Source: Dimorphilus gyrociliatus (lineage: Eukaryota > Animalia > Annelida). Taken from it: a stretch of DNA of 64,000 bases. The stretch covers positions 13,231 through 77,230 of the forward strand of contig CAJFCJ010000051.1 of NCBI GenBank assembly GCA_904063045.1. The letters are read 5' to 3'. Positions 37,947 through 63,892 of the stretch are shown piece by piece (position 1 is the first letter of the stretch; every line of letters starts with the position of its first letter). The notes below the pieces were generated by a model. The model saw only the letters and a list, made by a program, of their open reading frames with translations, was not told the DNA's origin and ran no database searches. The translations under genes and the position numbers were made by a program.

Positions 37947-39416
37947 AGACTCTATTACCAGTATCTCGACCCTACGTTCTATAGTAATTAGAGGGTAACC
38001 TTTCAAAAATCGCAGGTATAACAATCAGGTAAGTCACTTTTCATAAAATGTAACAGAAGAAGACCTAGATTCAATTCTATGTTCCTTCCTCTGTACATAT
38101 ATGGCCAATCCTATTTGCATGGGGCGGTCCAGAGCCCTATTCATTACCGCACCATGAAATATAACTGAATCTAAGATAAGGGGTGATTTCACCTCCAATT
38201 TGGACTTAGAATATTTTTGAAAAATTTATTGACTTTTTTCAGTCGAAATTTTTCTAAGTCCAAAACCTAACACTGTGTTAGGCTGGACTTAGAATATTTT
38301 CGGAAAATATTTTTTCCAAAATCTTTCTAAGTACCCAGGCGAATGTAACGTTTTTACAGGTAATTAACATGACAATGAACTTAGAAAATTAATGATTTTC
38401 GCGAAATCTTTACAAGTCCAGAGCCTCAGTGAAGGCCAATTTTTCAAAATCGTCGGATTGCTTTCAAACTTGAATCCAAGCTTGCCCCTACGTTGGAAAG
38501 ATAGAAAAAAATATTTTTATTTTTCTACCCGAACTCGGAAAATTTTCGATTTTCGAAGCTCAGCCACTCCTGAACTGTAAGAGCTACATGGTCGTGTAGC
38601 ATATCAGTGAAAAGCTCTTTTCGAGCTCTATCACCTCCAACAAAATTGAAACGTCTAGGATGACGCATAACGAAACTCCTAAACGGCCCAGATTTGGGAC
38701 ATTTTTGTCACATCACTGATTTTTTTGGATCAAAACTAACTCTTTGATATATATATCCTTAGGGTACTATGTAGCATAAGGTCTGTAGACCCATGTTAAA
38801 CTTTCAACCCCTTATATATATCAGACACACTTGTTCCTGTATGTAAGGAATACACTGAGAGATGGTTGAAGGTAGAGGTTATGGTTACATTAGACTGCTC
38901 ATGTATGATTGTCAATGGGTTGTCTTTGTGTTGATTGGGAAACCAGAAGGGACCTTTTGTTGGGGAACTTTTGTTCACTGCCAACTGTCAACCATCTGTT
39001 CTCTCATAGAGAGGTGTCTCCCCACAAATTACCCCATTCTTTATTATTTAACAATTGTTCAGAACAGGTCCCATGTCTGTCCAGTCTGTACCTTCTTCTC
39101 TGCTGAGTTAAGTGTTGGTTCCATTATCTTAGGTTAGGGTTAGTTGTAAAGTTTCACTAATTTGTATCTTTTTAGGGGGCTATAGCTTAGGGTTAGGATA
39201 GGTTAGGGTTAGGGTTAGGGTTTTTGTAATGTTGAACTAGATACTAAGATCTAAGTTCTGATGAAAGTTGAATAACTTCCACCAAAGTTTCAAGAGATTC
39301 CACAATGGTATGGAATGCAAGAGTAAGAACACTCTGTACAAGTAAGACTATCTACAACTGATTGATGAAAAATGTTCAGTTTATGTTTTAATTTTTTGAT
39401 GGTTACTAAGAATAGT

Positions 39417-39466
39417 TGACCTACCATGGTTTCGTCTTCCCCTTTTGCAAAGACTCATCAGGGTCA
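39417..39466 (-). ncRNA. Type I hammerhead ribozyme, intact
   Basis: Reverse complement: UGACC CUGAUGA GUCUU UGCAAAAGGGG AAGAC GAAA CCAUGG UA GGUCA. Stem III is the palindrome ACCAUGGU. Confidence 0.92.
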
Positions 39467-40025
39467 TTTCAGAAGATAGCTTCACTTACACTACCTTGAA
39501 GGGGAGGTCAGGACCAATTCTGCAATTGTATCCTGCCTTGCATTCCATTTTTGTCATAAGATTGATGAATGTGTATATATTGAATGGAAGAGGGAATGTT
39601 TTGTAACTGTATGTCTAATGATGTTTGTGTGTGTTTTTTGTAATGTCAACTTGTGGAAGTTGAATTTTGTAATCAATGTATGTTTGTTTGCATGAATGAA
39701 CATATGAGTATTTTTGTGTTTTGTAATAATTTTTGTTTTAATTTTTTTGTAAGCTGGATGATCAGACATAGAATCCAACTTGTACTGTTCTTCAAACCCC
39801 TTGACTCTCCTTACTTCTGATTAGGTTTTTGTAATGTTGAACTAGATACTAAGATCTAAGTTCTGATGAAAGTTGAATAACTTCCACCAAAGTTTCAAGA
39901 GATTCCACAATGGTATGGAATGCAAGAGTAAGAACACTCTGTACAAGCAAGACTATCTACAACTGATTGATGAAAAATGTGTGTTCAGTTTTTGTTCTAA
40001 TTTTTTGATGGTTACTAAGAATAGT

Positions 40026-40075
40026 TGACCTACCATGGTTTCGTCTTCCCCTTTTGCAAAGACTCATCAGGGTCA
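40026..40075 (-). ncRNA. Type I hammerhead ribozyme, intact
   Basis: Identical to the copy at 39417-39466. Confidence 0.92.
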
Positions 40076-40938
40076 TTTCAGAAGATAGCTTCACTTACAC
40101 TACCTTGAAGGGGAGGTCAGGACCAATTCTGCAATTGTATCCTGCCTTGCATTCTATTTTAGTTGGATGATTGTGTTTTAGAGGATACATGTTTGTAATT
40201 TTAATTTTGGAACAGATTTTTTTCTTTGTACAATGTTTGAGTTATGTAGACTGTATAAAGTAAATTCATATTTGTCTGATAAGTCTTATTTCAACAAGGA
40301 AGAAATGGCTTTGTTTAATGAATTAATTTTGAATGGATATGGTTTTTACTTGACAAAGAAACAAAAATTACTTCAAAGAAACAATATTGTACTTTTCTTT
40401 GAACAGATAAATTATAGAAATGTATAACTCACCCTGGTTTTCTTACACGTTGTGTTCTGAAAATTTCTTCCTAATGCAGCCTGTAGAAGGTTTTTGGGTT
40501 ATTTTTGTCTTTGTTTTGTTGTTTCTTGAGGCTGATTTCTTTTTATGATGGTATTTTTTTTCAACTGATGATATGTGGCTTGTTGTTACCCTTTTATAGG
40601 TGGTGGTTATGCAATTGACATATATCAAGATATTGCATTTTTTCTTGAAGGGCATGTTTTACTGTGTAAGTCCTTCCTGGGATATGTCTGTTGACCATCT
40701 GTTGCTTCTATATGGTAAAGTAAATACAAGGGATTTATGATGGACCTACAAATTTAATGAACTACAATAAATGTATTTTTTTTGGTCTAAACAAACACAA
40801 CATCAAAATGGACTAATATAATGTATGTTTTCTAAAATTGCTTTTTTCTTCTTAGGCTTGATAAAATTATTCATTTGAAATATAAACATGCAAAGAATTA
40901 ATAATTTTTATGGTTGAAAGTAACACTTCTGATTAATT

Positions 40939-42000
40939 TTACTGTTGATTTGAAGCTTGGAGAATTGGTCTGTTTAATTTCTTTTTTCTTCCAGTTCTAC
41001 TTTGTTGTTGTTGAAAGACTTCTTTACACTTGACCATAATTTCATTGGTAATCAAGTGTTGAACAATATTTCTCAAAGAAGACATCTTTCCAGGCAGAAC
41101 AATACCATGAAAAGGATCTCCTCTTATGATGGTATTAATATCAATAATTTTTGTAAACATGTTGTTCAAGTTTTCAGATTGTGAGGCTGGTTGTTGATGC
41201 AGATCACTTTTTTTGATGTTATATTGCATAAATAATAAGCATTCATTAGTAACTCCAGTGCTTTTATACAAAGCTTTAAAATTATCATCAGCATCATTAA
41301 TGGTGTTAAAGGGAATGTGAAGTGCTGTTATATGACTTTTTATTTTCCATTTGGATATAATTTCTTTACAATTTTGAAAGGTTAAGCCAGAAATGTTTAT
41401 AATGAGAACAGTTCCAAAAAAGCTGATGTTTCTTTTAACATCTTCTACCTGAATTAAATCTAAGTCACCCAAACTTTCATCACTTAAAAGAAGTAAATTA
41501 ATTTTGTTGGGAAATCCTACAGCTGGTTGTTGTATTTTCATAAGATTGGTAATTTCTTCCTTTCCAAGATTCACTCCAATTTCTGTAAAAGATCTTACCA
41601 TTTCATTAATATTTGAATTGTGTTTTCTATTAATTTTCATGGTATTGTTATATTTTAGAATATCATCAGTTTCATTAAGTTGTTGTAAAATCAATTCTAC
41701 CAATTGTTCCTTGTTGATACTATTTGATATGCCTTCTTCATTAAGCCACAATTTTTCATTGCAAAATTTTTTAAACTTTAACATTTTTTCTACAACATCT
41801 TTCTCATATTGACTTGGATCAAAAGTTGGTGGGTGAATTTTATTGTCTCTTTTAAACCTTTGAAGATGATTATAAAAAGTTCCAAAATTGAAAAATTGTT
41901 CAAAAGAACATTGCAGGAAATGTTCCATTTCAATTGTTTCATTGATGATTATTTGGTCATTTTCTACTCTTTGAACTTGATTTGGTTGCATGTTTGCCAT
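40939..42000 (-). CDS. Element-borne protein with SGNH/GDSL-esterase-like C-terminal domain, 353 aa
   Basis: Open ORF with a splice acceptor 10 nt before the ATG. Motifs: LLLLSDESL, IISKWKI, LHIPFN, GDPFH (block V DxxH-like). Confidence 0.65.
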   Translation of the reverse strand: MANMQPNQVQRVENDQIIINETIEMEHFLQCSFEQFFNFGTFYNHLQRFKRDNKIHPPTFDPSQYEKDVVEKMLKFKKFCNEKLWLNEEGISNSINKEQLVELILQQLNETDDILKYNNTMKINRKHNSNINEMVRSFTEIGVNLGKEEITNLMKIQQPAVGFPNKINLLLLSDESLGDLDLIQVEDVKRNISFFGTVLIINISGLTFQNCKEIISKWKIKSHITALHIPFNTINDADDNFKALYKSTGVTNECLLFMQYNIKKSDLHQQPASQSENLNNMFTKIIDINTIIRGDPFHGIVLPGKMSSLRNIVQHLITNEIMVKCKEVFQQQQSRTGRKKKLNRPILQASNQQ

Positions 42001-42167
42001 TTTGGAAGATCTAAATACAAGAAATTTTTATTGTAAAAGTTTTTGCAATTTTGTAACATAATACAAAAAATAATTTTAAATGAAGAAAGATAGACTACAT
42101 GAACATAGGCTACACTGAACAGAATTAATCATTCTAAACTAAATCCTTCTAAAAATGTATTCAAAGC

Positions 42168-45100
42168 TTAAATTTTCTTCTTAATCCTACGTCCAGTTCT
42201 AATTATTTTCTCCACAGCAGTTGTTGGTTGTAAATCATCTGTTTTATCATCCATCTTTCTTTTTGTGGCAAACTTTCTTGTTATTGTATCAAATTTAGGT
42301 CTTTTCTCTGGTAGAGAAGAAGGAGTAGTAGAGTTAGATGTATTATCAGACACATTTTTTCTTTTGTAAAAATGTTTGATTGTAGGTGGTACAGCTTTAT
42401 TCATTGAATCTTGGTATTTTTGTGGTGTTTCCTTATCTGATGAACTCTTTTTATCAAATAAAGATGATATATTGTGTTTTTCCTGTTTAAAGTAAACATT
42501 GTTATTAATTAATTTGAAATAACTACTGACATTGTTTGTAAAAGCAAATATCAGGGGAATATTTTTATATACCAAATAATTTTTTCCAAAATTTCTATAA
42601 GTTATTGCTATTTTTTTTAATAAGGGTCCAATATCATTTCTATATGGAATAACAAATGGTACTCTTGTAAAAACTTGACAACTGGTGTATCTGGCTAAAC
42701 CAAAGGGATAATAAAGAATATGTTTCATATTCAAGTGATAAACATATCTATTAATTTCAACAGTTGATATATCTTTTTCAATTTGTTCATAGGGAAATAT
42801 TGTTATGTTTAATTGATTTTCTGCAAAATGTTGATGTTGTATAAAGTTTTCAACAAGCTCATCATTTTTTAATTCTAAATATTTTCTTAATAGAAGGTGT
42901 CTTAGTGTTTGGAATATGTTGACTTTGGTATATTGTTCTTGTAAGTGGAAATACATCAATTGTGCACATTCTTTACATTGTAGAAGAAATATTTTTGAAT
43001 TTTTTGTTATCAAGTCTATTGAATTTTTCCTATAGAAGAAATTTAATCTAAGAGGGCAGAATATCTTTTCTCTGGTGTTAAAATATATGTTTAAGTCTTC
43101 AGGAATGCAAAGATTCTTATTTCTATTTTCTTCTAAATTGTATTGGTATTTTTCTTTCTTGTATTTTTCTTCAAGCACTGTATTTATTGCCTTCCGAATT
43201 TCTTTTGATGTGTAGCCTTGGTATAAAAGAGGTTTCATTACAGTTTGACAAGTTTGAAAAAAAAGAAATTGTGAGGAGCTATTGTTAAGAAATCTTTGAA
43301 ATTGAGATTTTAGCAGTCCTTTAAAAACATGCTTGGGATGAAGAGAACTCTTGTGAAGTTGATGAAAAGTATCACATTCTTTAAAGAAAGTCATATAATC
43401 AAGTTGATTGTTTGAAAGAAATCTTGTTCCCTTAAAGAGAGTTAAATCTAAGAAATTGATGCAATTATAGCTGACAGTTTCTTCAAACTTTAAATTTTTC
43501 AATATATTATTTGCTTTCTGAAGATACTTGTGAAATTCAGGCACTCCACTTGTCCAAATTAAGAAAATATCATCCAAATATCTCTTGTAAAATAGAGGCT
43601 TAGGCTTAATATTAAAGAGGTATAATTCTTCAATCCAAGCCATCCATATATTTGCATAGGCTGGAGCATAACTTTGACCCATTGCACAACCACTTTTTTG
43701 CAAGTAAATATTGTCTATAAATTTAAAGTGATTCTTATGTAAGTTGAATTTGAGAAGTTCAATGAGAAACATGTCAGGCCTCTCCTGGGAAGGATATTTT
43801 TCTAAGAAATATTTTATAGCTTTTAGTCCAGTGTAAGTATCAATATTGGTATACATACTTTTAATATCAAATGTCACAAGGAGAGAATCATCTGGAATTT
43901 TTATTCTATCCAGTTCATCTAAAAGGTGTTGAGAATTGCCAATATATGAAGAATGCAGCATGCTAATTGGCTTGAGGTAATGAGCTAAATATCTTGATAT
44001 TTCATAGGATTCTGTTCTTAAATTACTAACAACAGGTCTGCCTTTAGGAATTTTTCCTTTTATTAGCCATTGATCTGGTTCTTTATGAATTTTCGGCAAG
44101 CCATAAAATATTCTATTTTCAAAAGAATGCTTCCTTGTAGATACAGAATTTAACAAATGTTTATATTCTTCTTCACATAAACAAACTTTAAATGTTTCAA
44201 TTAGGTCTTTATAATACTTCACAGATTTTTGTAAAAACTGGTCACCACAAATATTAATATTTGAACTTGTTGATAATTGACAATATTGTTTATTATTAGA
44301 GAGTAATTGATTGCACATGTAGACATAATCTTCGGTGTTTTGTATTACAATACAAGATCCTTTATCTGATGGTTTAATTACAATGTTTAAGGATAAAAAC
44401 TTTGTTAATGACCTGAAGAATTCCTTGTCAAATTTTCTATATTTATTGAAATTGTCTTTAAAAATATTATTCTGTATTGCTTTTTTACAACATTTAAAAA
44501 ATTGCATCATATTATCACAGTCATCATCACTCTCTTCTGTATCATCTTGTTCATCTATGTAAGATATCACTTTTTCACATTCCTTTGGTTTCCATTTATT
44601 TTTAATAAATCTAAGATTTCCCACTCTTGTTTGACTATTTTGTTTTTTAATAATTGATAGCTTTTTAAAAAATTTCTCTAAATTGAATAGTGTATATTGT
44701 TTCCATTTTGTTGGTTTAACATGTTCATACACAAACTTTAAACCCAATTTTAAAAAATTATTAATATCATTAGGAATCTGATATTTGCTTAAATTAACAA
44801 TGTACTGAGTATTTAATTGTCTATAGAAAGTTAAAAATGCTACCTTGTTGATTGTTGCATCCATTTCACAGTTTCTCTCATTGGGATGTTTGCTAATTTT
44901 GTGTAAAGTTTTCATTACCAAGTCAATAGAAAACTCTTGAGCTTTCTTGGTTAAATGCTTGGATTTGGAGTTTCCAGTTGGATTTTCCAAATATCCCAAT
45001 TTTCTCATGTCTGTCAAATCAATAAGAGAGGCTTGATTATTTATAGCCTTTTGAATATCTTTACAGGAAGACAGCAGTTTGGTTCCAAAAGGAATGGCTA

Positions 45101-46790
45101 GAATTACGTTCTTGCAAGTTCCAAACTTATCTTTTAGTAATGTAGCTACTCCAAGGGTTTGTTTAGAAGAATTCAAATTAGCATGTATGAATATATATTG
45201 ATATTGAATATTCCAATTTGTTAAAATTGGTAAAATATCATCATAATTTAATTGACTGATGTTAATTATTATTCCAGTTTTAACACTGTTATATTTTGAA
45301 GCTGATAGTGAAATATTCTTTACTGCAACATCCCTAAATGAACTGTCAGAAATCATTAGAAATTCTGCTTTCATTGGTACATTTGGTGGTAGTAATTTTG
45401 AATAATGCTTTGCTTCTTTGTCTGATAAAAAATTCTTTCCACATTCTGCATAGAGATGAATCAATTTTTTATCTTTCCTATAATTATTTCTCAGTATCAT
45501 TCTCCAACCTTTATATTTTCTGATGTGATCTGTTATGCTCAAGACTAGTGAATTTATGCCATCAATAGTAGTATTAATATTATTTTGGATATTTTCATTA
45601 ACTTGATCTTCAGATCTCTTCTGTTCCAAAGCTAACCAAAGGTCATCATCAAATAGGTCAAGTTCACTAGAATCAATTAAGATGTTTGTATTAGTATCTA
45701 TGGGTGAATATGTTTTTAGAGGTGATTGTAATAGAAGAGATTCATTTCTTTTTTCATCCATAGGTGCTATTAAATGATTGCTTTCTTTTTCAACAAATCC
45801 AGCTGTTTCCAAATGATCAATGTCAATAAAGTTCATCTTTTCAATTACTGATTGATCATCTTTTGCTTCTTGAGCCTTCTTACAGATTGAGGTTTCACAT
45901 TCTGATTCATTAATAATAGATAAAACATCTTCTATGACTTTGCCTTCTAATTTGGTTGATTTTTCTTGGTGTTCTTTGAGACTTTTCTTGTTATTCCTGA
46001 TTTGGTCATTAATTATAATATGATTTTTCACAATTACTGGAGTTTCTTGAACAGTCTTGAAATTTTCTTCTTTCTGGATTATCAGTGTTTCTTCAATTTC
46101 TCTATTTGTTTCTTCTTTCTCAATCATTTGTAGATCTTGGATTTCTTTATCACATATCATTTTCTCAGAGACTAATTCTTTGTCCAGTTTCTTAATACTT
46201 GTGGTAATCTTATTTTTGGTGTCTTGATTTTTCTTATTATTTCCATTGTACTCTCCTTCAGGCATTTCTTCAGTTTGACCCTTTTTCTTACGGTTGACAT
46301 TGTTTTTACATCTCATACAGAATGTAAATAATATATCCTTTGTTTTCTGAACAAATTCTTTATCCAATTTTAAAGATTTTTCTAAGAAGATCTTGGAAAT
46401 CCATTTCTTGATATCAATCCCATCAAACTGTTTACATAGAATACCAAAAGTAGAACAATAGTTTTCCAATATGAGAAACTCTTCCAGATTTTCCATGTAT
46501 TTCTTTTCAATTAAATCTTTGAAATTGTTGTAATCTTCCTTCATGGATTCTTGGAAAGGCTTTGTTATAGCAAACCTATTTGTAAAGTATAAAGAGTCTG
46601 ATAAACTGCAGATTTTTTTAAAAGGAACTCTGGTATGTTTTTCAATATGTTTGTCAATGACAAATTTAAGTTGTTTATACATATCATATTTTGCTGTATT
46701 TAAATTGAGTTTGAAACATTCCTTTTCCTCAAAGATGTCTGGGTAAAACCATGGATAGAGTTGTTGCTTTGCTTTCTTTTTTTTTTCCAT
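42168..46790 (-). CDS. Penelope-like reverse transcriptase polyprotein (SGNH-like domain, RT, thumb, degenerate GIY-YIG), ~1540 aa
   Basis: Uninterrupted ORF with PLE motifs LKLGLKF, IKPSDKG, FYGLPKIHK, GRPVVS, FDIKSMYTNI, GCAMGQSYAP, YLDD, NFLDL and HPKHVFKG. A GIY-YIG-like remnant runs KIFLLQCKEC...YPFGL. Confidence 0.92.
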   Translation of the reverse strand: MEKKKKAKQQLYPWFYPDIFEEKECFKLNLNTAKYDMYKQLKFVIDKHIEKHTRVPFKKICSLSDSLYFTNRFAITKPFQESMKEDYNNFKDLIEKKYMENLEEFLILENYCSTFGILCKQFDGIDIKKWISKIFLEKSLKLDKEFVQKTKDILFTFCMRCKNNVNRKKKGQTEEMPEGEYNGNNKKNQDTKNKITTSIKKLDKELVSEKMICDKEIQDLQMIEKEETNREIEETLIIQKEENFKTVQETPVIVKNHIIINDQIRNNKKSLKEHQEKSTKLEGKVIEDVLSIINESECETSICKKAQEAKDDQSVIEKMNFIDIDHLETAGFVEKESNHLIAPMDEKRNESLLLQSPLKTYSPIDTNTNILIDSSELDLFDDDLWLALEQKRSEDQVNENIQNNINTTIDGINSLVLSITDHIRKYKGWRMILRNNYRKDKKLIHLYAECGKNFLSDKEAKHYSKLLPPNVPMKAEFLMISDSSFRDVAVKNISLSASKYNSVKTGIIINISQLNYDDILPILTNWNIQYQYIFIHANLNSSKQTLGVATLLKDKFGTCKNVILAIPFGTKLLSSCKDIQKAINNQASLIDLTDMRKLGYLENPTGNSKSKHLTKKAQEFSIDLVMKTLHKISKHPNERNCEMDATINKVAFLTFYRQLNTQYIVNLSKYQIPNDINNFLKLGLKFVYEHVKPTKWKQYTLFNLEKFFKKLSIIKKQNSQTRVGNLRFIKNKWKPKECEKVISYIDEQDDTEESDDDCDNMMQFFKCCKKAIQNNIFKDNFNKYRKFDKEFFRSLTKFLSLNIVIKPSDKGSCIVIQNTEDYVYMCNQLLSNNKQYCQLSTSSNINICGDQFLQKSVKYYKDLIETFKVCLCEEEYKHLLNSVSTRKHSFENRIFYGLPKIHKEPDQWLIKGKIPKGRPVVSNLRTESYEISRYLAHYLKPISMLHSSYIGNSQHLLDELDRIKIPDDSLLVTFDIKSMYTNIDTYTGLKAIKYFLEKYPSQERPDMFLIELLKFNLHKNHFKFIDNIYLQKSGCAMGQSYAPAYANIWMAWIEELYLFNIKPKPLFYKRYLDDIFLIWTSGVPEFHKYLQKANNILKNLKFEETVSYNCINFLDLTLFKGTRFLSNNQLDYMTFFKECDTFHQLHKSSLHPKHVFKGLLKSQFQRFLNNSSSQFLFFQTCQTVMKPLLYQGYTSKEIRKAINTVLEEKYKKEKYQYNLEENRNKNLCIPEDLNIYFNTREKIFCPLRLNFFYRKNSIDLITKNSKIFLLQCKECAQLMYFHLQEQYTKVNIFQTLRHLLLRKYLELKNDELVENFIQHQHFAENQLNITIFPYEQIEKDISTVEINRYVYHLNMKHILYYPFGLARYTSCQVFTRVPFVIPYRNDIGPLLKKIAITYRNFGKNYLVYKNIPLIFAFTNNVSSYFKLINNNVYFKQEKHNISSLFDKKSSSDKETPQKYQDSMNKAVPPTIKHFYKRKNVSDNTSNSTTPSSLPEKRPKFDTITRKFATKRKMDDKTDDLQPTTAVEKIIRTGRRIKKKI

Positions 46791-49700: not shown

Positions 49701-49877
49701 GTGTTATTTTTTTTGGGAAGCCATTACATTGGCACCTGACACACATAGCAAGTAGAATAATATACAAAGATTGAAAAAGATATAAAAGGGTTTTAAATAT
49801 AGATTGTAATGTTGGATTAGTAACACTGCATAATTATAATCAAGAACTGTTAATGCAAAAAAATTAGAATGACAAAT

Positions 49878-51410
49878 CTATATTTCACTAAAAAAGTGTC
49901 TAAGTAGGTGATTTTGTTGTTGTTTTTCAGGAAGTTCATTAAATCCACCGTTTTTGGTTAGCAACTTATTTTGTAGTTGCTCAGGAATTGTAATAAAGTT
50001 TAATCCAGCTTTTTTCATATTTCTTTCAGTGTATGTTGTAAAATAATGGCTAGGAAAAACCATTTTCTCTAATTTTATAGGCTGAGTAATAATTTTACTG
50101 GAGGATGTTAAGGCCTTGCTTTTGGTGTAAAAGAAAATTCTTTTGAATGATAACTTCCATTTTAAACATATCTCAATAATATCCATAAACTTTAATTCTT
50201 TAATCTTAATGAATAGTACATTTGGTGCATTTCCAACTGTTTTATCCTTTATCTGGAATATTTCATTTCCTGAAACCTTATCAAAAGAATTATCAGTTAT
50301 TAGTATATAATCAAAATCTTCTTTCCTAAATTCTTTCTTAAATGCTTGGTCAATTTTGACATTTGTCCTCTTTAGGTAAGTAAAGCTGTTTAGCCGTAAA
50401 ACATTCTCAGTCTTCTTTTCTTTGTTCATTCTTTGCTCTTGTACCTTCTCTTTCTCTTTCAATTCTGATTTTTGATGATGCGTTATACTTTGTGCGTTTC
50501 CTGTGTTTAAGTGTTGATCTTGTTGATGCTCCTGTGGTTCAGTTCTTCTCTCAATAACTGGTGCCTTTTTTCCTCCATTTAGCTCTTGCTGATTTGCCAT
50601 TTCTGGTTTTTCTTTGGACTCTTGATGGCATGTTCTTTTTTCCAGTCTAGCTTTCTTTCTCTTTGGTTCTTCTAATTCATTTGTTAAGTCATATGCAATA
50701 ACTTTATCCTTCATGGCTGCCTTTTCTCTTTTTTTCGATATTCTTGGAATAATTGTTTGAGTACATTCATCTTTAACTTTTGGTGATATTTGAATACCAA
50801 TCTCCTGTGTTAATGGCTTATCTACTTGGACTCCAACCTCTTGAATAACTTGTTGTGTCTCTGTTGGTTGAGTAGGCATAGCTTCTTGTATGGTAGTATT
50901 TCCAGTTAATTGTTCCTTCTTGTTAGTCATATTGTCATAAAAATCTAAAAGATCCTCATAAAATTCATTAATATAGCTTTTAGAAAATTCCCTGATATTC
51001 CGTTTACTGTTAAGGACCTCACCATTTACAAAATTTAAAATTTTTATTAATTCTTCCCTAGAATCCACTAGCTGTAGCAATCTTTTTAAATAAAAATATT
51101 GATCAAGTCTCTTTTGTAACTTGTAGAAATTTTTAAAACACTTTTCAACAGTATTTATTAGTTGGGCCTTTACTTCAAACATTTCTTCAAATGTATTATA
51201 TTCTTGAAAGTATTTATAATACTCTAATTTATTATTTGCACCTAAATCTGTTCTCTTCACTTCATTGTTTAAAATATGATCCCAATGATTGTGTGTTTTG
51301 GAATTTTCTGCTTTATAATAGCATTGAAGTATATATCGCAGTTGAACTTTTAAATTGTTTACATTCACATCAATATGTGGATGAGCATATGGCAGAGTTT
51401 TGTACGGCAT
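49878..51410 (-). CDS. Element-borne protein (conserved N-domain, charged linker, SGNH-like domain), 510 aa
   Basis: Long open ORF in very AT-rich DNA with an acceptor 19 nt before the ATG. Paralogous to the 25.0 and 32.1 kb ORFs. Motifs: YILITDNSF, CLKWKL. Confidence 0.75.
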   Translation of the reverse strand: MPYKTLPYAHPHIDVNVNNLKVQLRYILQCYYKAENSKTHNHWDHILNNEVKRTDLGANNKLEYYKYFQEYNTFEEMFEVKAQLINTVEKCFKNFYKLQKRLDQYFYLKRLLQLVDSREELIKILNFVNGEVLNSKRNIREFSKSYINEFYEDLLDFYDNMTNKKEQLTGNTTIQEAMPTQPTETQQVIQEVGVQVDKPLTQEIGIQISPKVKDECTQTIIPRISKKREKAAMKDKVIAYDLTNELEEPKRKKARLEKRTCHQESKEKPEMANQQELNGGKKAPVIERRTEPQEHQQDQHLNTGNAQSITHHQKSELKEKEKVQEQRMNKEKKTENVLRLNSFTYLKRTNVKIDQAFKKEFRKEDFDYILITDNSFDKVSGNEIFQIKDKTVGNAPNVLFIKIKELKFMDIIEICLKWKLSFKRIFFYTKSKALTSSSKIITQPIKLEKMVFPSHYFTTYTERNMKKAGLNFITIPEQLQNKLLTKNGGFNELPEKQQQNHLLRHFFSEI

Positions 51411-53014
51411 AAACCATTTGATACTCAGGCTATAGGAAAGGTTAAGAGTTATTAATTTCTCACAATTTAAAATTTATGTCAAATATTAAAATACATTAAA
51501 AAGTATATAAGGCTAATGGTGAATTAAAAATGTATGAACAATATAAAGTCTACTTCACACATGTATAAAAAGCCTTTTTTAAATGTGACTTTACCAACTA
51601 ATGACAATTTTGCCAAGGAATATTAATTATTTTAAATGTAATACTTAGTTATATTACTTTGAATTAACATTAGGAAATTGTTTATATGTCTTAAAAAGCT
51701 GATTACCTAAAACTTATAAGACCTACATTTGTGAAATTAATTCGGCACATATATGCCACAAATATATGTATTAAAGAAATATTTAAAACCATCAAATCAC
51801 TTACATCCTTCATAGTTCATTTTAAATATCTACATTTGCAACCAAATAGATTATTGTACAATAACCTTTATTATTCATACTATTTACATATTTTTATATA
51901 TATTTTAACCTACTATTTATTAATTTACAACTTTTAACCTATAATAGCAAAAGAATCAAGACTCTTACATCTTAATATTTTGTATTTCTTGCTTGATACA
52001 GCTTAGAATTTTTCTAATATCCTACAAATAAAAATATTTGCTATGTCTTTCTTCTTCTAAATTAACTTTTAAAAGATATTATTGTTGGATATTCACACTA
52101 TTTTTTAATTTCGCCTATTCCTAACATTATATATCTCTTTAAATATAAGATACATGAATAAATAATTCAATTAACATTTAATGCTCTTGATCAATTTAGT
52201 GCAAAATGCAAGAAATCAATCCAAAAAATACAAATATTACAATGGTCAATTCAGAACTAAAAAGTAAGGAATCAACCAGAAATCACTCAAATAATATACT
52301 AACTTTGAATTGGACATGATGATTTTTCTAAGAAAAGGATTGAAAAAGAAAGTTTTCCAGAAGTGTCTGTGGGAATCTATTAAAGAATGCAAAAAAGATG
52401 AATTAATAAGAAGGAAACTGTATAAATAAATCATCTTACCTGTATCAAATTCTTCACAGGAAGCTGTTATGGAACGATAAATTCATGGAAAAGGAGTGAA
52501 AATTTAGTGAAATTTTTGTAGATAACTTTTTTATTTATAAGTACTACCTTGAATATAATTGTTTTTGTCTTTAGAACAGCGTAGTAGAAGTGGAACTTTT
52601 CTAAAATTAATATATAACAATTAAACATTTGTAACAGAAGTTTTTGCTAAAACAGTTGAAAAACTGTAAGTAACTTACTAGCACAAAAGTATGATCTTCA
52701 CTTAATTGTGACGAATGTTATAATGAAGAAATAACCAGTATATATAGAAGGTATTGACTGTTTGAAAACCTTTTTACACAATGGAGAAAGGCTAATTAAA
52801 GAATTAAATCAGTGCCAGTTCTTTAAAAACAATTGATCCAACAAGTGCTTGTTTAAGGGTTGCTTTGTCAAGGAAATGTGTAAACAAGCTAATTAGGGTA
52901 TGACATTTAAGGCTTTTCTTAATTTGTAAAGAATCTGTCTTTTCTGGCTAAATTTTATTAGCCTATATAAATCATTTTAAATGTAGAAAGAATTCATTTG
53001 ACATTTAACGCAAA

Positions 53015-53317
53015 ATGGAACCATGGATGGTTACAGTTCAAAAGCACTATGCAGTTCTTGTAAACATTGAAAATTATTTAGAGGAGCTTGACGAAACTGA
53101 TGGATTGTGTTTGTATATCATGCTAAGTGAAAAGCAAATAGTTCTGATGAGATTATTTAATAAGGAGAAAAATGAATATATGCAGTCTGCTTTAAATTGT
53201 TGTGTTCAAAAGATGGCAGTCCTGAAGAGGAAACTTCAAGAAAAGTATGATTTTCATTTATGTTCTAAAAGGATGGAAGAAATATTTGGAATTAACATTT
53301 ATGACTATTGGAAATAA
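53015..53317 (+). CDS. Small orphan protein, 100 aa
   Basis: ATG start, upstream acceptor at 52986, AATAAA ~35 nt after the stop. Confidence 0.45.
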   Translation: MEPWMVTVQKHYAVLVNIENYLEELDETDGLCLYIMLSEKQIVLMRLFNKEKNEYMQSALNCCVQKMAVLKRKLQEKYDFHLCSKRMEEIFGINIYDYWK

Positions 53318-54818
53318 TAGCAAAAATTTGCTTTTTTGGTTATTGTTTAATTCAATAAAATGTTATACTATAATAATAATAGTTTTTTTAACTGAAATTT
53401 TATGATATAAGCAATGGATAGTTTTGTGAGAATGTTTCTTATCTGCCGTTTTTGAGATAAGCTGATTATAGGGAACAAATCTTTTCAAGTTTTTTTATCA
53501 TGACACTTTCACATATTTTGACTGGAGATAGCGTTCACATGGGAAAAACAGTAGAAATGTTTCAAGACATTAGGTAATTGTATATTATATATATATATAT
53601 CACTTGGAATTAACCACTAAATTACAGTTTTGCTTTACTCAATTACTGTTTACCCAATTTATCAAGCTTTTTTATATATATAGATTATTCTGGCTTGTAT
53701 TATATTGTGCAAAGATTTAACAAGCATTTATGTTTGTTCTGATCCTTCTTTCATGATATGTCATTTTGTCAAATTTTATGAATGATTTATACTGAATACT
53801 TTATTGCATTATTTTAATTTAATTAATAGTTTTACTATTTTATAGCATACATTGTTTTTTGAATTATATGATAGCTGGAGTAGGTGGAGTTTTCTTTCTC
53901 TGAGATAAGTGTTAGCCAATGGGGAGCCAGTACTATCTCTTGATTCGATAAAAAGGGAGTTTTTCATTTTAGTTATTTACAATCAACTTGGTCTCCATTC
54001 GGTAAGGATGATAGTTCTCTAATGCATAAAATTAAAGTAACATTTTCTTTAACAGAATCTTCAATCTTTCAATTCTTTCATTGTCAAGATATTTAAGTTA
54101 AAATATAACTAGGTGAGTTAATGTTTTAATTTATTTAATTGGTTTCATATTCTCTTTAATATTACAATTCTTTCAGCGCTTCATTACGGTTGGTCCTCTT
54201 AATTGCAAGAAAATCCTAAAAATATTTTAAAGTATGTATTTCTATGTTGTTCTGTCCTGTACTTCTCCCTCATAGTTGTATTTTATGCAACTAGAGAGAT
54301 GTTCATTTATATATGATAATTATATAATACTGTTAATATCTGGAAGAGCATATGCAGCACAGGCATGAAATCTTTATTATTGTAAATATTTTTTTAGGTT
54401 GTGTTGGAGTTTCTTTAAATTTTTTTGATTTACACTTACTGAAAAAAGAGTGGAAAAATAAGATGAATATACTACTTCAAATTTAACCATTGAAATTTTC
54501 AACAAACTCTAATAAAAAGAAATTTTTCAAGCCTAAAATTATTTGAAAACTACTACTTTACCATGGTATACTATGCAAACCAAACATTTAAAAAAAAAAT
54601 ACCAGTTTCATGGCCATAATAAAGATTTTTTGCCTTGCTGTATTAATAAAACATAAGGGTTTTGAAGATGCCATTTACGTAGAACTTATCTAGATTAGAT
54701 ATTTTCTGTGGACAATATCTATCTCTTGCATATCTTCATTTGTATATGGCAGTATAGAAAAACCTTTAATTTATTAAAGTTTTGTAACAAATATATTGAA
54801 ACTTGGTTGTTGCTACAG

Positions 54819-55142
54819 ATGATAACATTTATTATTGATCTCATTCAAGAAGTTAACCATAAATTGTATCAAATAATTGGGCTTTTTAACAAAAACATGC
54901 TTTTAGATGAAGCATTTTATAGTTTGTTTTGCAATCATTATATTAAGGATTTGAGCTATGTTCAAGATATACTAGAACTAATATATGATTATAATGAACA
55001 TAATAATTTGATGTATGCAGAGTTACAAGATAAAATATTTAAAACCATTATCAATATTAATACTGTAACAAATTTAAAAGACATACTTGTGGAATTTGAT
55101 TTGCATGTGTTACCAACTGATTTTCTGTTCAATCTAAATTAA
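54819..55142 (+). CDS. Small orphan protein, 107 aa
   Basis: ATG directly after TTGCTACAG, in frame with ORF 54708-55142. Confidence 0.45.
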   Translation: MITFIIDLIQEVNHKLYQIIGLFNKNMLLDEAFYSLFCNHYIKDLSYVQDILELIYDYNEHNNLMYAELQDKIFKTIININTVTNLKDILVEFDLHVLPTDFLFNLN

Positions 55143-55174
55143 AACATGGCAAGACAGAGATTTTGATAGTAAAA

Positions 55175-55211
<37 letters not shown>

Positions 55212-55392
55212 CCTAATGTATATATATATATATATATATACATTAGTGTCACTAAGTCTTTGTTTTCATAAATATCTGACGAATTAATTGCTTTTTAAAT
55301 TATAAATTTTATTCAAAATTGTAAAAGTCATTATATTAGATAATTTTTTTGGCTTCTTTTACAGACTAATCCATTCTTGCTATATATTTCCA

Positions 55393-55665
55393 ATGAATGA
55401 CTTTGAATATTTTTATGATAATAGAACTAAACACATTAACAATCTCTTGGAAATGTTAAATAGTGATAATACAACATTGAATGAGAAAACATATGGAGAA
55501 TGGGAAGAATGTTTATGCATAACTTTTGATGTTTTGGAAGACAATATCATGGTAATGAAATCTGTTCAACATTGGGAAGAATATTTGAAAAGAAAAAACC
55601 TTAACAAACTTTATGATAATTTGATTTCCAGTATTCTTAATTATGTTATTAAATATCATTGTTAA
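55393..55665 (+). CDS. Small orphan protein, 90 aa
   Basis: ATG start with an acceptor at 55364. Begins MNDFEY, like MSEFEY of the 57279 ORF. Confidence 0.45.
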   Translation: MNDFEYFYDNRTKHINNLLEMLNSDNTTLNEKTYGEWEECLCITFDVLEDNIMVMKSVQHWEEYLKRKNLNKLYDNLISSILNYVIKYHC

Positions 55666-55908
55666 GATGAAAAATTACATGTATGGTTTTTCCCATTGTT
55701 AGCTTATTAATTTGTTTTTTTTTGTCACTTGACATAGTATTCTGAAAGAAATTAGTTGGTAACAATCTATTTGCTCCTCTTTTTTAAACTTTTATATAAC
55801 TCAGGATAAATAAAATTTGAAAAGATTAATTCCTACTTTTATCTAGCTTTAAAAACCAAATTGAATCATAAGTATCATATTTATATTTATCTTTTTTTTA
55901 ACCAGATT

Positions 55909-57126
55909 ATGGCATATAGAAATGAAAAGCTTTTCAAATTTAAATCAAAGAAAACTCATGCTAAAATGGGTACAAGTAAAAATCAATTAAGTGATTGTGA
56001 AGTAGAAACAATACATAAACCACCTGAGTCTGTTCAATGTTTAAAAAGAGATGATGAAACAAGTAGAGCATGTTCAATAGAAAACAAGAAACAAACAACC
56101 TTAATCCAATGCTTCAGTAAAAAGAGAAAGAATGAAGTGGTAGATATTATTCATGTACCAGAAGCAGATTGTACTAAAGAAAAGGATTCAGAAACAGTTT
56201 CTGAAATAGAGATATGCGACAAACTTAGTCAACCAAAGAGAAAGAAACAAATTGATATTGTTGAAATATCATCATCATCACAGTCATCCACAGAGGAGTT
56301 AATGAGAAAAATATCAACCAATTTTGAGGAGGAGTTTTTAATGAAAGATTCCAATTTGCAAATTGATGAAACCTTAAAGAAGAAATTACTACATCAACAG
56401 AAATGTGATGATATCAAATTTGAAAGTGGTTTAACTGTATTTGTAAGGAGAAAAAGCCAATCGTTTATAAATTTTCTTGAACATTTCTGTAAAAATAGGC
56501 CTTTTGTAGCCATTGATATCCCACAATTAATAAGACAAGTTCCCCCCCAGAAAGAAATTAAATCAAAGTATTTAATTATAACTGATACAAGCTTTGATTA
56601 TGATAAGAATACCTTAGCTCTTAACATACTAAAATTTGGTTTAGATAACGAATTATACATAATCCATATTGAGGATTTAATGGCAAATGATTTGCCAAAG
56701 ATACTAAATGATTGGAAATTTGAATGCAAACAAATTGTAATACATTTGTTAGAACATCCAATTGTTATTAACAATTATCTGGAGAACTTTTACAGAGAAT
56801 TTAAACTAATATCTGATTCAAACCAAGTTTTTATATGTATAACAATAAAAATTAATAATATACCAAGGTTTTGTAACTTTCCTTTTAAAAATTGTGACAA
56901 ACTGGTTGAGGTAGGTAATAAGAATCATTTAGAAAATAAATTTGTTAAGACTTATTATCTTCCAAATAATGAAACTATCCTCAAGAATCCCTATATAATA
57001 ATTATCCAATTTTTAGTAAATTTTAACAAAGGGTCTGTAATAGAAGTACCAGATTTAAAAAAGCTTGTTAATCAACACAACAAAAACAAAGATAAATCTT
57101 CAAAAGATAAATTGTTAGATTGTTAG
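55909..57126 (+). CDS. Element-borne protein with SGNH-like C-terminal domain, ~405 aa
   Basis: ATG 3 nt after TTTTTTTTAACCAG. Motifs YLIITDTSF and ILNDWKF are shared with the paralog family. Confidence 0.7.
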   Translation: MAYRNEKLFKFKSKKTHAKMGTSKNQLSDCEVETIHKPPESVQCLKRDDETSRACSIENKKQTTLIQCFSKKRKNEVVDIIHVPEADCTKEKDSETVSEIEICDKLSQPKRKKQIDIVEISSSSQSSTEELMRKISTNFEEEFLMKDSNLQIDETLKKKLLHQQKCDDIKFESGLTVFVRRKSQSFINFLEHFCKNRPFVAIDIPQLIRQVPPQKEIKSKYLIITDTSFDYDKNTLALNILKFGLDNELYIIHIEDLMANDLPKILNDWKFECKQIVIHLLEHPIVINNYLENFYREFKLISDSNQVFICITIKINNIPRFCNFPFKNCDKLVEVGNKNHLENKFVKTYYLPNNETILKNPYIIIIQFLVNFNKGSVIEVPDLKKLVNQHNKNKDKSSKDKLLDC

Positions 57127-57278
57127 TAATCTTTGTCAAGAAATTAAGAAATTCATTGTGAAATGAAGGTTATGTGAAATTTACATAAAAACATTTTTTA
57201 AGCTAATAATTATGTGATCTGTTTGAAAAATTTGAATACAAATTCTTTTTTGTTAATTCTCTTTTTTTTTACCAAAAG

Positions 57279-57578
57279 ATGAGTGAATTTGAATACAAGA
57301 TTGAGAATAAGCTGTATTACTTGACAATTGTCAAAGATGAAATATCTGGACTTGGATTTTTCAACCCATTATCCAGAAATCAAGTTTATGATATTTTTAC
57401 AAAACTGGTAGAGGAGGAAGAAGAATTCATGGGACTCTATCCTAAAATTAGTGGAGTGGATCAAGAAAAACTAAAAGAATTACTTGATACATATCATGAA
57501 ATATTTTGTTATATTGTAGAAGTATTATTTGATATTAATGATGTATTGTTCCAGGTTCATGACAATTTATTTTATTAA
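57279..57578 (+). CDS. Small orphan acidic protein, 99 aa
   Basis: ATG directly after a T-rich acceptor; AATAAA ~35 nt after the stop. Confidence 0.45.
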   Translation: MSEFEYKIENKLYYLTIVKDEISGLGFFNPLSRNQVYDIFTKLVEEEEEFMGLYPKISGVDQEKLKELLDTYHEIFCYIVEVLFDINDVLFQVHDNLFY

Positions 57579-58459
57579 AAGATATAATCATTTTATCAAA
57601 CCTATTAAGTTAAATAAACATTATTGATGTGGCTTAAATAAAAAGAACAACAAAACCTAAAATAAATATTCATAACAACTAAATTTATAAAACATTTAGG
57701 TAAAGATGGGAGTTTCCATTTAATTGACTAAAGAGTTCTTTCTAAAATGTGAAGAGTTCTTTGGATTCTTTTGATGCATGTGATTGATAATGTACTTCTC
57801 TTATAAGCTGGAACTTTAATTTAATGAAAATATTCCAAAATAAAGAGTTATAGACAAGAGAATAAGAAATTTTCAGAATTTTTGCTTTGAAAAATAAAAT
57901 TACTTTGAAAAATGTAAATATTTTTAAATATCAAGATCTAACTTACAAAAGAAATATATTATTTACTCATATTTGTTGCTTAAACTCTAATTGTACAAAA
58001 AAATTCAAATAAACAACTATGACAACACTTAATAATAACATTTATTTGTTGAAATTTTTACTATGATTTTAAAAAGAAAGCTTTATAATGTGACAAAATA
58101 TTAAAACTATTGTTCAATTATTTTAATATATTTTGTTAGGTGAAAGGGCTAGGGTTTAGGGTTAGGAAAAAATGGTTTGAAACTTAATTATATCTATATA
58201 GATAACTATTCATTTTAATAGTATTGAATGACAATATCTCGTAAGTTTAAAGATACATTGACTAAGTACTTGTTTGATATTGAGCTTACAATACAAAAGA
58301 GTCTACTTTTCCTGTAGTAGTAACTGTTCACATAAAAAAACTTGAAAAAAGATAACATTTTATAATGTATTACTAGCCTATTACTACAATTTCAAGCCGT
58401 TTTAATTAAAAAGAAAAAAGTCAATATTTAATTCTTCTTTAAAAGAAATATATGAAAAT

Positions 58460-59020
58460 ACTGACAGTATAAAGCATAGAATTTAGGGTATCTTTCCATA
58501 AATCTGTAGATACTCTTACTTGAGCAGTATTTGGATTAATGGTAAAAAATTGAGGTGCTGGGAACACTCCTACCAGCTGGTATTCAATTTTTCCTTCATT
58601 GTCTCTATCTTGTGTTGTCAAATCAAGGAGGAGTGGACTGATCACTGACTCTAACTAGAATCTGATTTAAAGGAAAATAATAGAATTATGACATAAATCT
58701 ACAAAGAAGACAGTTTTATGTTTAAGATTTTACTGTATCAGTATTGTGAGTTAAAGATTGAAGATTGTATTTGAGACTAATTGATCCAGTTGATGGATCA
58801 ATATGATATCTTTGCATTACATCTTCTGTACCAGTTATTTCATATCTGAAAAATATTAAAATGAATATACACATATTTTATTAACAAATATAATGTTACC
58901 TTAGTACATCATCCTGTATCCTGATCATTTGCTTTTACTTTAATTATTTGGTGACCAATTTGATATCTATCATTAATCGAAACTCTGTATCTACTTTGCT
59001 CAAATTTCAGTTGATAAAAG
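58460..59020 (-). pseudogene. Cadherin-repeat gene fragment with introns
   Basis: Three exon pieces: KFEQSRYRVSINDRYQIGHQIIKVKANDQD; YEITGTEDVMQRYHIDPSTGSISL; ILVRVSD and TTQDRDNEGKIEYQLVGVFPAPQFFTINPNT. They are flanked by GT-AG sites and carry stops and frameshifts. Confidence 0.75.
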
Positions 59021-59464
59021 TTCCTATTAACTCAAAGGATTAGAGAAAAAATTGCAGAGGAAGTTACAGGTCATTTATCATCTATAACTTTGATTTCACA
59101 AGTGAAATACTGTTTAAGGTCAACTTGTTATTTAAAACATACAATCACTCATTCGAAAAAATCAAAGGATGTCTGAATATTTCTGATTATCAAATTTCTC
59201 AGATGATGGCTTTGAATTTTAAAATATGACCTGATTTATTTAAATTCCAGAAAACAAACTTCATTTCTAATAAATTTAGAACGCCAATCAATTACCAAAA
59301 ATGTTGAAATAATCAGGTCCAAAAAACAATTTTTTGTTGAATCAATGATATTTTTGCAAGAGATCTCAAACCAGAAACTAATCAGAAAATAGGACAATGT
59401 CATCATGAAATTTTTTTAATTGATCATTTGGACCATAGAAAGAAAAATCACAGTCAGGGGCAAC

Positions 59465-59884
59465 ATGTTCGGATTTGGTAAGGCAAAGGATGAGGAAAAA
59501 GAAAAGTCAAAAATTGAAACCAAAAAGAACCAGTCAGAAGATCAGAAACCTGATAAAGATACAAAAAGAGTTAAAAAGGGCAGCGTAGAAGGATTACAAG
59601 AGGAGCCACTCAAGGAAAAACAACAGGAGGAAACAAGGAAATCAGAAGAGAAGCAAACTGAAAAAAACGACACAGATGAAAAACAGAGCAAAGAACAGGA
59701 AAAATCTGAGTCAAAACTCAAGAAAGACCAAGATTTGCTGAAAGAAGAGCAAAAGGCTCTAGAAAAAGAGAAATCTAAGCTAAAAAGTGATCAGGAGATG
59801 TTTCTCAGCAGGAAGACTGACAGTTACGAGGAAAAACATGAAAAGCTCATCGATCTCTTCAAAAATGAATCTAGAATTTCATAA
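59465..59884 (+). other. K/E-rich ORF running into GPI remnants
   Basis: MFGFGKAKDEEKEK..., low complexity, with a GGG-like motif just upstream of the ATG. Identity unknown. Confidence 0.35.
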
Positions 59885-60368: not shown

Positions 60369-60517
60369 GAAACTGAAAAATAAAGATTTTCTTGAGTTCT
60401 TTCAAATTTTATGGTGAAATTCAAAGGCAGTCTATTCTGAAATATTTTTTAGATATTTTACTTCTAAAAAAGTGACTTAAATCATATAAAACTTATTTGT
60501 GTTGATTTTACCATCCA

Positions 60518-61137: not shown

Positions 61138-61208
61138 AATTATAAATAAAAAATGGGTGTTTTTCCTGTTTAAAGTCTTTTTCTAAAAGTCTTAGAGAAG
61201 AATTGATT

Positions 61209-62260: not shown

Positions 62261-62455
62261 GTTATTGGCTGATTAGATTTACAAAAATACAATTTTGAAA
62301 CAAATTGTTTAGAATTGTGAGAAATGAGATATTTGTCCATGATCAAAGCCAAATATTCTGATTAAAATGATTATTGCATCATATTAAGATTGTTTCTAGT
62401 TCAATACCTGTAAAATCTAAAAAAAATTCTAGAATTAAGAAACTTGTACACAATT

Positions 62456-63851: not shown

Positions 63852-63892
<41 letters not shown>

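Follow-up and report, generated by a model that had tools for sequence, protein, structure and literature searches.

The last 64 kb of contig CAJFCJ010000051.1 of the annelid Dimorphilus gyrociliatus form a chromosome end, and this whole stretch is referred to here as the window. On its minus strand lies a Penelope-like element (PLE) whose long open reading frame (ORF) joins a reverse transcriptase (RT) to the remnant of a GIY-YIG endonuclease (EN), and whose 3' end abuts a short tract of TTAGGG-type telomere repeats (Table 1). From the residues that it has lost, the EN remnant is predicted to be catalytically dead. The reading favoured here, and considered probable, is that this endonuclease-dead annelid PLE was added to the chromosome end by reverse transcription primed from the telomeric overhang. 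An earlier reading of the DNA without database searches (the sequence-only reading) had proposed a Terminon-like element outside the bdelloid rotifers, and this part of the proposal stands: the host is an annelid, the PLE is EN-deficient, it carries hammerhead ribozyme motifs and its 3' end is joined to TTAGGG repeats. The other anatomical parts of that proposal which were recovered are the junction itself, the tandem hammerheads and an intact PLE RT on the minus strand.

The plus strand of the window is the G-strand and runs 5' to 3' into the terminal telomere. The tract at the 3' end of the element reads TTAGGGTTAGGATAGGTTAGGGTTAGGGTTAGGG on this strand, and immediately to the right of position 39222 lies the antisense of the 3' end of the minus-strand element; read on the element strand, the junction is ...ACAAAAA-CCCTAACCCTAACCCTAACCTATCCTAACCCTAA. 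This orientation is the one expected from reverse transcription primed by a G-overhang. All telomere-like runs of at least two units in the window are G-strand on the plus strand, with none on the minus strand, and TTAGGGTTAGGG occurs 40 times against an expectation of 0.01. The tracts at about 17975, 18886, 19184, 19525, 21605 and 39187 are each followed, on the plus strand, by the antisense 3' end of a hammerhead-bearing element. A 3' end in reverse-complement telomere repeats with uniform polarity, which defines the EN-deficient telomere-attached class, was found at 39187-39222 and at a minimum of six further junctions of related short elements.

The short elements are non-autonomous, measure 1.6-2.1 kb and are located at 17351, 17967, 18886, 19540 and 21605. 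All of them begin on the plus strand with (GGGTTA)nGGGTTTGCAAAAGG, their 3' ends thus being ...CCUUUUGCAAACCC(UAACCC)n, and a hammerhead lies about 250 nt in from the start of each. Among the telomere-joined elements of the window the 3' ends are fixed and the 5' ends variable, and the subtelomere is a head-to-tail array cut by interstitial telomere tracts. One solo copy of the 3' module has a C-to-U change in its hammerhead core and telomere tracts on both sides, and fits a 5'-truncated addition that was later re-capped. A junction of the same type, in which a small element's 3' end follows a telomere tract, was identified on contig CAJFCJ010000043.1 (locus L002).

The RT ORF opens with an N-terminal extension of 640 aa. 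Its phmmer matches are PLE proteins (E down to 1.7e-96, 34-42% identity), and the best of these relatives carry PF00078, PF28514 and PF26215 (RVT_1, DUF8422 and HTH_animal), usually together with GIY-YIG. All RT motifs are kept, and the RT alignment is invariant at DKG, LPKIHK, GRP, the motif A Asp, SGxAMG and YLDD. Membership of the PLEs is indicated by a PLE-type RT with the N-terminal NLS..KGLKF and DKG motifs, RT1-7 and thumb, and by type-I hammerheads in tandem repeats. The long ORFs (1541, 510 and 353 aa) stay open in DNA of 28% GC. Exact database look-ups returned no record of the RT ORF or ORF353 sequences, cluster look-ups yielded no names, hmmscan against Pfam was uninformative for the RT ORF as well as for every accessory ORF, and sequence searches of the PDB with the RT and with a profile of the shared domain described below gave no match. 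The locus of the best RT match (L001) is an ordinary 4.9-kb PLE, unrelated to the accessory ORFs of the window. A '2404-aa ORF' at the second D. gyrociliatus RT locus (L003) was rejected as an artefact of an N gap.

The EN remnant is in frame and retains CxxC, His and GL. The changes are the Tyr of GIY to Phe, loss of the Gly of YIG, loss of the catalytic Glu of RE, and the Asn of GLN to Ala. The catalytic losses were found in all three members of the family: the window RT, DgyrCDS14925 (P0168, contig 101) and the 1327-aa ORF of locus L005; the family has therefore long been without a nuclease of its own. The remnant is followed by the motif PFV.P...N.N, as in relatives with a zinc-finger linker, and the CX2-5CxxC linker itself is missing from the window RT ORF. 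Locus L005 (Logan ERR14224706, 8.3 kb) contains a fused RT ORF with a hammerhead about 930 nt downstream; its sequencing runs probably come from another species, since the protein collection lacks the RT ORF of the window itself. The runs in which related ORFs occur are ERR14224704-6, SRR23372229 and SRR24081689. Two RT-fusion genes lie head to head in L005, about 790 bp apart, the orientation thus not being uniform everywhere.

Without a nuclease of its own, the element might also have entered telomere repeats by site-specific insertion, with a nuclease provided in trans by another PLE or by the host, in the manner of TRAS and SART in silkworm. Telomere tracts on both sides of some units (19184-19552) agree with this, as do the CxxC/His zinc-finger residues kept by the remnant, which could still bind DNA. 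The explanation is judged highly improbable, since the polarity is uniform at all junctions, 5' ends vary where 3' ends are fixed, none of the family members has an intact EN and the window revealed no intact EN+ PLE.

Together with P0168 and the L005 ORF, the window RT makes up a clade that has a support of 100 and sits on a long stem. The closest matches alone do not settle where this family attaches in the RT tree; when far PLE-like proteins are added, it falls inside a clade with a support of 98 that holds all the relatives with a C-terminal EN and excludes the EN-less proteins with the Coprina-type DKN motif. Forcing the family to join the DKN group costs 32 log-likelihood units, with an approximately unbiased (AU) test p of 0.04, a marginal rejection of a grouping named post hoc. 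The tree was built by a quick method with unlabelled database proteins as references, and its placements are only indicative. No bdelloid protein is present among the named RT matches, and Athena is compared here by description only. The family looks like a case of independent EN loss rather than a relative of Athena, because an in-frame GIY-YIG remnant is kept and the RT groups with the C-terminal-EN PLEs.

The 3' region of the element is formed by a 605-bp repeat in 1.6 copies with one hammerhead each. The two 50-nt motifs are identical and comprise a core and three helices: UGACC-CUGAUGA-GUCUU..AAGAC-GAAA-CCAUGGU-A/GGUCA (the slash being the predicted cleavage site). As parsed by hand, the core CUGAUGA...GAAA is complete, the cleavage triplet is GUA, helix I is UGACC/GGUCA (5 bp), helix II is GUCUU/AAGAC (5-6 bp) and helix III is ACC-AU-GGU, a 3-bp stem with a 2-nt loop whose sequence, ACCAUGGU, is palindromic. 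Such a short palindromic helix III has been described for PLE hammerheads that cleave as dimers (PMC7761336). The predicted cleavage of copy 1 follows GUA and falls between 39422 and 39421, with some 200 nt left before the telomere tract downstream; in copy 2 the site is predicted after GUA at 40031.

The strict core pattern has four matches on the minus strand of the window and none on the plus strand. Across six copies from three diverged families, 94% of the cells form standard pairs, versus 26-52% when the 3' partner is slid, and two pairs of helix II are compensatory, with both sides changed. All five junction-bearing copies (17975, 19204, 19553, 21613 and 39223) have the start of the hammerhead core at 232-257 nt from the junction; the tails between junction and hammerhead come from different sequence families (three diverged) despite this fixed spacing, and the length of the tail, about 200 nt, appears to be constrained. 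In the hammerheads of two neighbouring small elements (19748-19810 and 21813-21871, minus strand) helix III is ACCACGGU and ACCGUGGU, which are non-palindromic yet exact reverse complements of each other, the copies of the RT element having the palindrome. This pattern looks like covariation that would keep an intermolecular (dimeric) helix III between tandem copies.

Under the favoured reading the element would be transcribed from the C-strand, the minus strand of the window, and its RNA would end in the tail of about 200 nt followed by CCCUAA repeats. These repeats would pair with the TTAGGG 3' overhang, which would serve as primer; the element's own RT, apparently intact, would copy the RNA onto the G-strand, and telomerase would re-cap the new end. 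Repeated rounds, together with the short non-autonomous hammerhead-bearing elements of the same 3' design, would give head-to-tail units between telomere tracts, and the process may still be active today. Overhang-primed terminal retrotransposition has been proposed for Athena and Coprina (PMC6431247, PMC13159263), and the scheme is that of the published model for EN-deficient PLEs (PMC8557442, PMC6431247, PMC13159263).

Several observations weigh against this reading. The window contains a single copy of the RT element, and the 5' end of the unit has no second copy to define it. Only one other D. gyrociliatus relative was found; its identity is 40-44%, and telomere repeats are absent from the 10 kb around it, although an assembly gap takes up its 3' side. 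In L002, a fragment of ORF353 points the other way with respect to the local telomere tracts. Rfam runs gave no hammerhead at gathering scores nor at E<=1; a 101-nt scan yielded, on the minus strand only, the sub-threshold matches Hammerhead_3 (16.8 bits, gathering score 48.5) and RAGATH-1-hammerhead (13.4 bits), so that the hammerhead calls rest on hand parsing and pair counts. Hammerhead variants whose helix III is minimal may be expected to score below threshold (PMC7761336). Finally, about 200 nt separate the hammerhead from the telomere repeats, which in Terminons are described as adjoining it directly; cleavage at a site so far upstream would sever the coding RNA from its telomere-complementary tail. 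The minimal ribozyme would then either be mostly inactive as a monomer and act only in tandem transcripts, or matter through its fold rather than its cleavage.

The low copy number also agrees with the view that the RT-fusion ORF is a relic or a domesticated gene, old, immobile or retained by the host, with a junction that records an ancient event. The paralogues are deeply diverged (40-50% identity) on a long stem, and yet their ORFs have stayed open, suggesting selection; the element is located 24.8 kb inward of the present telomere, and only 4.87% of the D. gyrociliatus genome is made of transposable elements (PMC7854359). Against it stand the two 3' repeat units, 96-99% identical, the complete 3' module of the same design as that of the neighbouring short elements, and the presence, in other sequencing data sets (L005), of related ORFs that have a hammerhead downstream. 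This view is considered unlikely, and terminal addition by the endonuclease-dead PLE is retained.

The N-terminal extension of the RT contains a domain that is shared with the accessory ORFs. Paralogy links residues ~417-640 of the RT ORF with parts of ORF353, ORF510, ORF421 (plus strand) and ORF349 (32.5-33.6 kb), with E values of 4e-8 to 2e-3. The AlphaFold2 (AF2) model of the domain, made from 11 sequences, has a predicted local distance difference test (pLDDT) of 83 and a predicted template modelling score (pTM) of 0.79. Its Foldseek matches are almost all SGNH hydrolases, led by E. coli TesA, brain PAF acetylhydrolase and GDSL lipases and also including acetyl-xylan esterases (E about 1e-4, template modelling (TM) score 0.55-0.62). 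An earlier model from a 5-sequence alignment was discarded (pLDDT 57, non-significant Foldseek matches). The block I motif is GDSS in P0167, ADSS in P0166, GNSS in P0168 and SDSS in the window, and the motif KHLT is located at the expected place of the block V His. Only the RT-fused copies (window, P0166, P0167 and P0168) retain the candidate Ser of block I and the KHLT His. In the stand-alone ORFs the nucleophile position is occupied by Glu, Thr, Gln or Asn; ORF353 has Glu and is therefore non-catalytic. Sequence-profile searches, including the Pfam GDSL families, gave no match to the domain, and an exhaustive profile search of 1.84 billion protein representatives identified it in 7, all from D. 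gyrociliatus or a few sequencing runs. Predicted fold and motifs together point to a divergent SGNH/GDSL esterase fold, and the RT-fused copies may have esterase activity. The 'novel gene set' of the sequence-only reading calls for qualification: the domain is very divergent, with its 7 representatives, whereas the SGNH/GDSL fold is an accessory function already listed for Terminons (PMC6431247).

Extensions of a comparable kind were observed elsewhere. P0024 and P0090, which are ordinary EN+ PLE proteins, have N-terminal extensions with GDS-type motifs, and P0090, from a catfish, has a weak match to Lipase_GDSL_2 (E 0.014); hhalign of the domain with the N-termini of both proteins was not significant. 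Esterase-RT fusions may be more widespread in PLEs than usually noted. A sixth copy of the domain at 61.9 kb was rejected, being interrupted by stops and of weak similarity. The sole outside relative of ORF353 that was found is the last exon of DgyrCDS14481, a discoidin-domain protein on contig CAJFCJ010000043.1, which derives from an ORF353 copy (L002 11466-11830; 68% aa and 81.5% nt identity) and is either exonised element sequence or part of a chimeric gene model.

The secure unit spans 39223-46793 (7.6 kb) and comprises the 3' modules with two hammerheads, ORF353 and the 1541-aa ORF. The 3' modules and ORF353 lie between the 3' end and the RT and, from this position, must have been copied along with it. 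The unit may extend to ORF510 at about 51.5 kb, which would make it 12.3 kb; the membership of ORF510 is uncertain because a 38%-identical relative occurs in locus L011 without an RT nearby. Next comes the block from o100p to o99p at 53.0-57.6 kb, where all the long open frames are on the plus strand and three of them are joined by the genome annotation into one spliced gene (P0165). The whole block recurs in the same order in locus L010, with 56-68% aa identity, and partly in L011. In L010 the position is internal to a 210-kb contig, and neither an RT nor a hammerhead nor a telomere tract occurs within 10 kb. The block is best read as a neighbouring or captured gene and not as an obligatory part of the element.

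The sequence-only reading had taken the whole of 39223-58139 as a single multigene unit of about 19 kb with co-oriented ORFs. As one Terminon-like retroelement, it would have an RNA with antisense genes and a 5' end capped by the tract at 58140-58166. That tract has the right polarity, ORF421 on the plus strand carries a paralogue of the SGNH-like domain, L003 also has two o144p-like ORFs just upstream in divergent orientation, and Terminon arrays are described as capturing genes (PMC6431247). The single unit is improbable all the same, since the block lies on the opposite strand and is complete and collinear in L010 without RT, ORF510 recurs without RT in L011, no 5' boundary copy of the 3' module was found in the window, and the related RT loci L003 and L005 lack both ORF353 and ORF510, a conserved ORF order being likewise unsupported. 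Co-orientation holds for ORF353 and ORF510, which are on the RT strand, and fails for the 53.0-57.6 kb ORFs; likewise, paralogous ORFs are present up to the next junction, as had been claimed, with those at 53.0-57.6 kb not co-oriented. An observation named beforehand as refuting the unit, the RT elsewhere as a standard PLE of ~3-5 kb unlinked to these ORFs and to telomeres, was made for one half: the plus-strand block recurs in L010 away from RT and telomere repeats.

Table 1. Features of the element and of its telomeric surroundings in the window, in order of position.
Feature	Position	Strand	Remarks
Solo 3' module	19199-19523 (325 bp), within 19184-19552	+	~80% identical to 39223-39563
Interstitial telomere tract	39187-39222	+	TTAGGG variants, ~5.5 units; abuts element 3' end
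3' repeat unit A (605 bp)	39223-39823	-	First ~345 bp (39223-39563) form a discrete module
Hammerhead copy 1	39417-39466	-	Minimal type I, palindromic helix III
3' repeat unit B, partial copy (350 bp)	39824-40173	-	96-99% identical to unit A
Hammerhead copy 2	40026-40075	-	Identical to copy 1; 609 nt upstream of copy 1 on the RNA
ORF353	40939-42000	-	Between RT ORF and 3' end; SGNH-like paralogue
RT ORF (1541 aa)	42168-46793	-	N-terminal extension, SGNH-like domain, PLE RT, GIY-YIG remnant (predicted dead), post-EN tail
GIY-YIG endonuclease remnant	42684-43001	-	In frame, collinear with the EN of relatives, downstream of thumb
RT core, DKG motif to thumb	43194-44396	-	YLDD at 43569-43580
SGNH/GDSL-esterase-fold domain (predicted)	44874-45401 (aa 465-640 of RT ORF)	-	Block I SDS and KHLT His
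ORF510	49878-51410	-	3.1 kb upstream of RT ORF; degenerate SGNH-like domain at C-terminus
Gene block o100p, o144p, o90p, ORF421, o99p	53009-57580	+	Partly annotated as one spliced gene
Degenerate telomere tract	58140-58166	+	GTTAGGTGAAAGGGCTAGGGTTTAGGGTTAGG; same polarity as the others; right limit of the interval in the sequence-only reading
Terminal telomere	63720-64000	+	(TTAGGG)~47; contig end

The Athena elements and Terminons of bdelloid rotifers, reportedly described by Gladyshev and Arkhipova in 2007 and by Arkhipova and co-workers in 2017, are the closest known systems in organization. They are reviewed in PMC6431247. Shared features are a PLE RT without a working endonuclease; hammerheads close to a 3' end terminating in reverse-complement telomere repeats; head-to-tail subtelomeric arrays with short telomere tracts and host-like genes between; a size larger than that of a canonical PLE; and, with Terminons and here at the level of the fold only, a GDSL/SGNH-type esterase among the accessory functions. 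Differences are the annelid host and the repeat (TTAGGG here, TGTGGG there); the in-frame GIY-YIG remnant, Athena being described as wholly without EN (PMC8557442); the grouping of the RT with C-terminal-EN PLEs, among the sequences compared; and the fusion of the esterase-like domain to the RT N-terminus. In Terminons, moreover, the telomere repeats are immediately downstream of the hammerhead, whereas here they are about 200 nt away, and the Terminon unit reaches up to 40 kb with accessory ORFs, whereas 2-3 co-oriented ORFs and 7.6-12 kb can be assigned here. No DEDDy, Rep or stand-alone EN was seen in the annelid element.

Coprina, from the chromosome ends of fungi, diatoms and clubmosses (PMC13159263, PMC8557442), shares the flanking telomere repeats, terminal direct repeats, hammerheads and the absence of a working EN. 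It differs in its DKN motif and lack of any EN domain, where the annelid family has DKG and an EN remnant, and in its size of ~4-6 kb with 1-2 ORFs; the DKN-type EN-less proteins fall outside the clade of the annelid family in the tree with unlabelled references (support and AU test above). Secondary loss or decay of GIY-YIG near EN+ PLEs, with the need for another source of 3'-OH, is likewise found in the Neptune-like MjPLE01 of the kuruma shrimp, compared here by description, and in the 'EN*' subclades (Craig et al. 2021, PMC8557442). In contrast to these, an alternative source is visible here, in the form of the telomere-repeat 3' end and the uniformly polar subtelomeric array, and the 640-aa extension with the SGNH-like domain has been gained.

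Esterase modules are known from other retroelements: in ORF1 of CR1/L2 non-LTR (long terminal repeat) elements, according to the mention of Kapitonov and Jurka 2003 in PMC8557442, and in bdelloid LTR elements and Terminons (PMC5408684, PMC6431247). The annelid domain resembles them in its SGNH fold, with TesA and PAF-AH (the PAF acetylhydrolase) as best structural matches, and differs in having no sequence match to the Pfam GDSL families, in its Ser/His being restricted to RT-fused copies and in its rarity (7 of the 1.84 billion representatives).

The window is AT-rich (25-36% GC). The gene model P0165 maps to contig CAJFCJ010000051.1 of assembly GCA_904063045.1, and the sequence of locus L004 agrees with window 45453-64000 in every base. 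A human origin, considered on account of the TTAGGG repeats, was rejected on the GC content and on the identity with the D. gyrociliatus contig. A host-like part of 35% GC, with a leucine-rich repeat G-protein-coupled receptor (LRR-GPCR) ORF, extends to about 17 kb, and from there to the contig end the DNA consists of subtelomeric repeats and elements. The interval from 58167 to the terminal repeats comprises two phosphoglucose-isomerase (PGI) fragments at 59787-60368 (plus strand), distal to the degenerate telomere tract; a lipase/alpha-beta-hydrolase ORF at 61209-61730 (minus strand), in the 58167-63616 interval; and a divergent PCNA paralogue at 62456-63285 (minus strand), annotated as 249 aa. 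These genes fit the 'host genes between units' of Terminon descriptions, and may be either functional duplicates of the subtelomere or captured pieces.

An 87-nt block, formed by variant telomere repeats (GGGTTTGGTAAGGGTTATGGGTTAGG) and a 52-nt non-telomeric insert, is duplicated at 99% identity at 19029-19115 and 63636-63722. The terminal telomere directly adjoins one of the copies; the other, located 44.6 kb further in, may represent an old chromosome end or a very small element of the telomere-attached type. Two DNA transposons with FLYWCH zinc-finger ORFs occupy 28627-31846 and 35019-37947, both with inverted arrays of 22-bp subterminal repeats. Internally deleted derivatives of about 960 bp are present twice in L010 (6126-7086 and 16603-17561), 98-99% identical to the ends of the 28627-31846 transposon; one of them splits the o100p exon there, and the transposon family has therefore been recently active. 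A degenerate satellite with a period of ~359 bp and copies 60-80% identical extends over 22300-28430 and surrounds ORF317 (25289-26242, minus strand), whose middle part has a paralogue in the N-terminus of ORF510. Another gene resembling ORF510 occupies 32090-33586 (plus strand).

To our knowledge, detailed descriptions of telomere-attached, EN-free PLEs in animals come essentially from bdelloid rotifers. Searches of the literature yielded no account of a telomere-attached PLE in annelids, and the D. gyrociliatus genome paper (PMC7854359) makes no mention of Penelope elements or telomeres. EN-less PLEs at chromosome ends, including those of fungi, and EN loss within EN+ clades are already known (PMC8557442, PMC13159263); the element therefore represents a new phylum for a known kind of system and not a new kind.

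A more specific scenario is put forward tentatively, as possible though not the likelier outcome. In it, a dinophilid PLE lineage would have converged independently on the Terminon/Athena lifestyle from an EN+ ancestor: the EN would have been reduced to a zinc-finger remnant, the 3' end would have gained the hammerhead, the 200-nt tail and CCCUAA, and an SGNH esterase would have been fused to the RT, spawning non-catalytic subtelomeric paralogues; with its short riders, the lineage would still extend TTAGGG ends beside telomerase.

Telomere-attached EN-free PLEs bear on the relationship between telomerase and retroelements. An annelid case on canonical TTAGGG repeats with a decayed GIY-YIG would, if true, mean that this lifestyle can arise secondarily from ordinary EN+ PLEs, and that an esterase module has been recruited again in a telomere-attached setting. 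The elements would then extend the chromosome ends of one of the smallest animal genomes; D. gyrociliatus can be cultured and its genome is of 74 Mb, which makes the mechanism directly testable.

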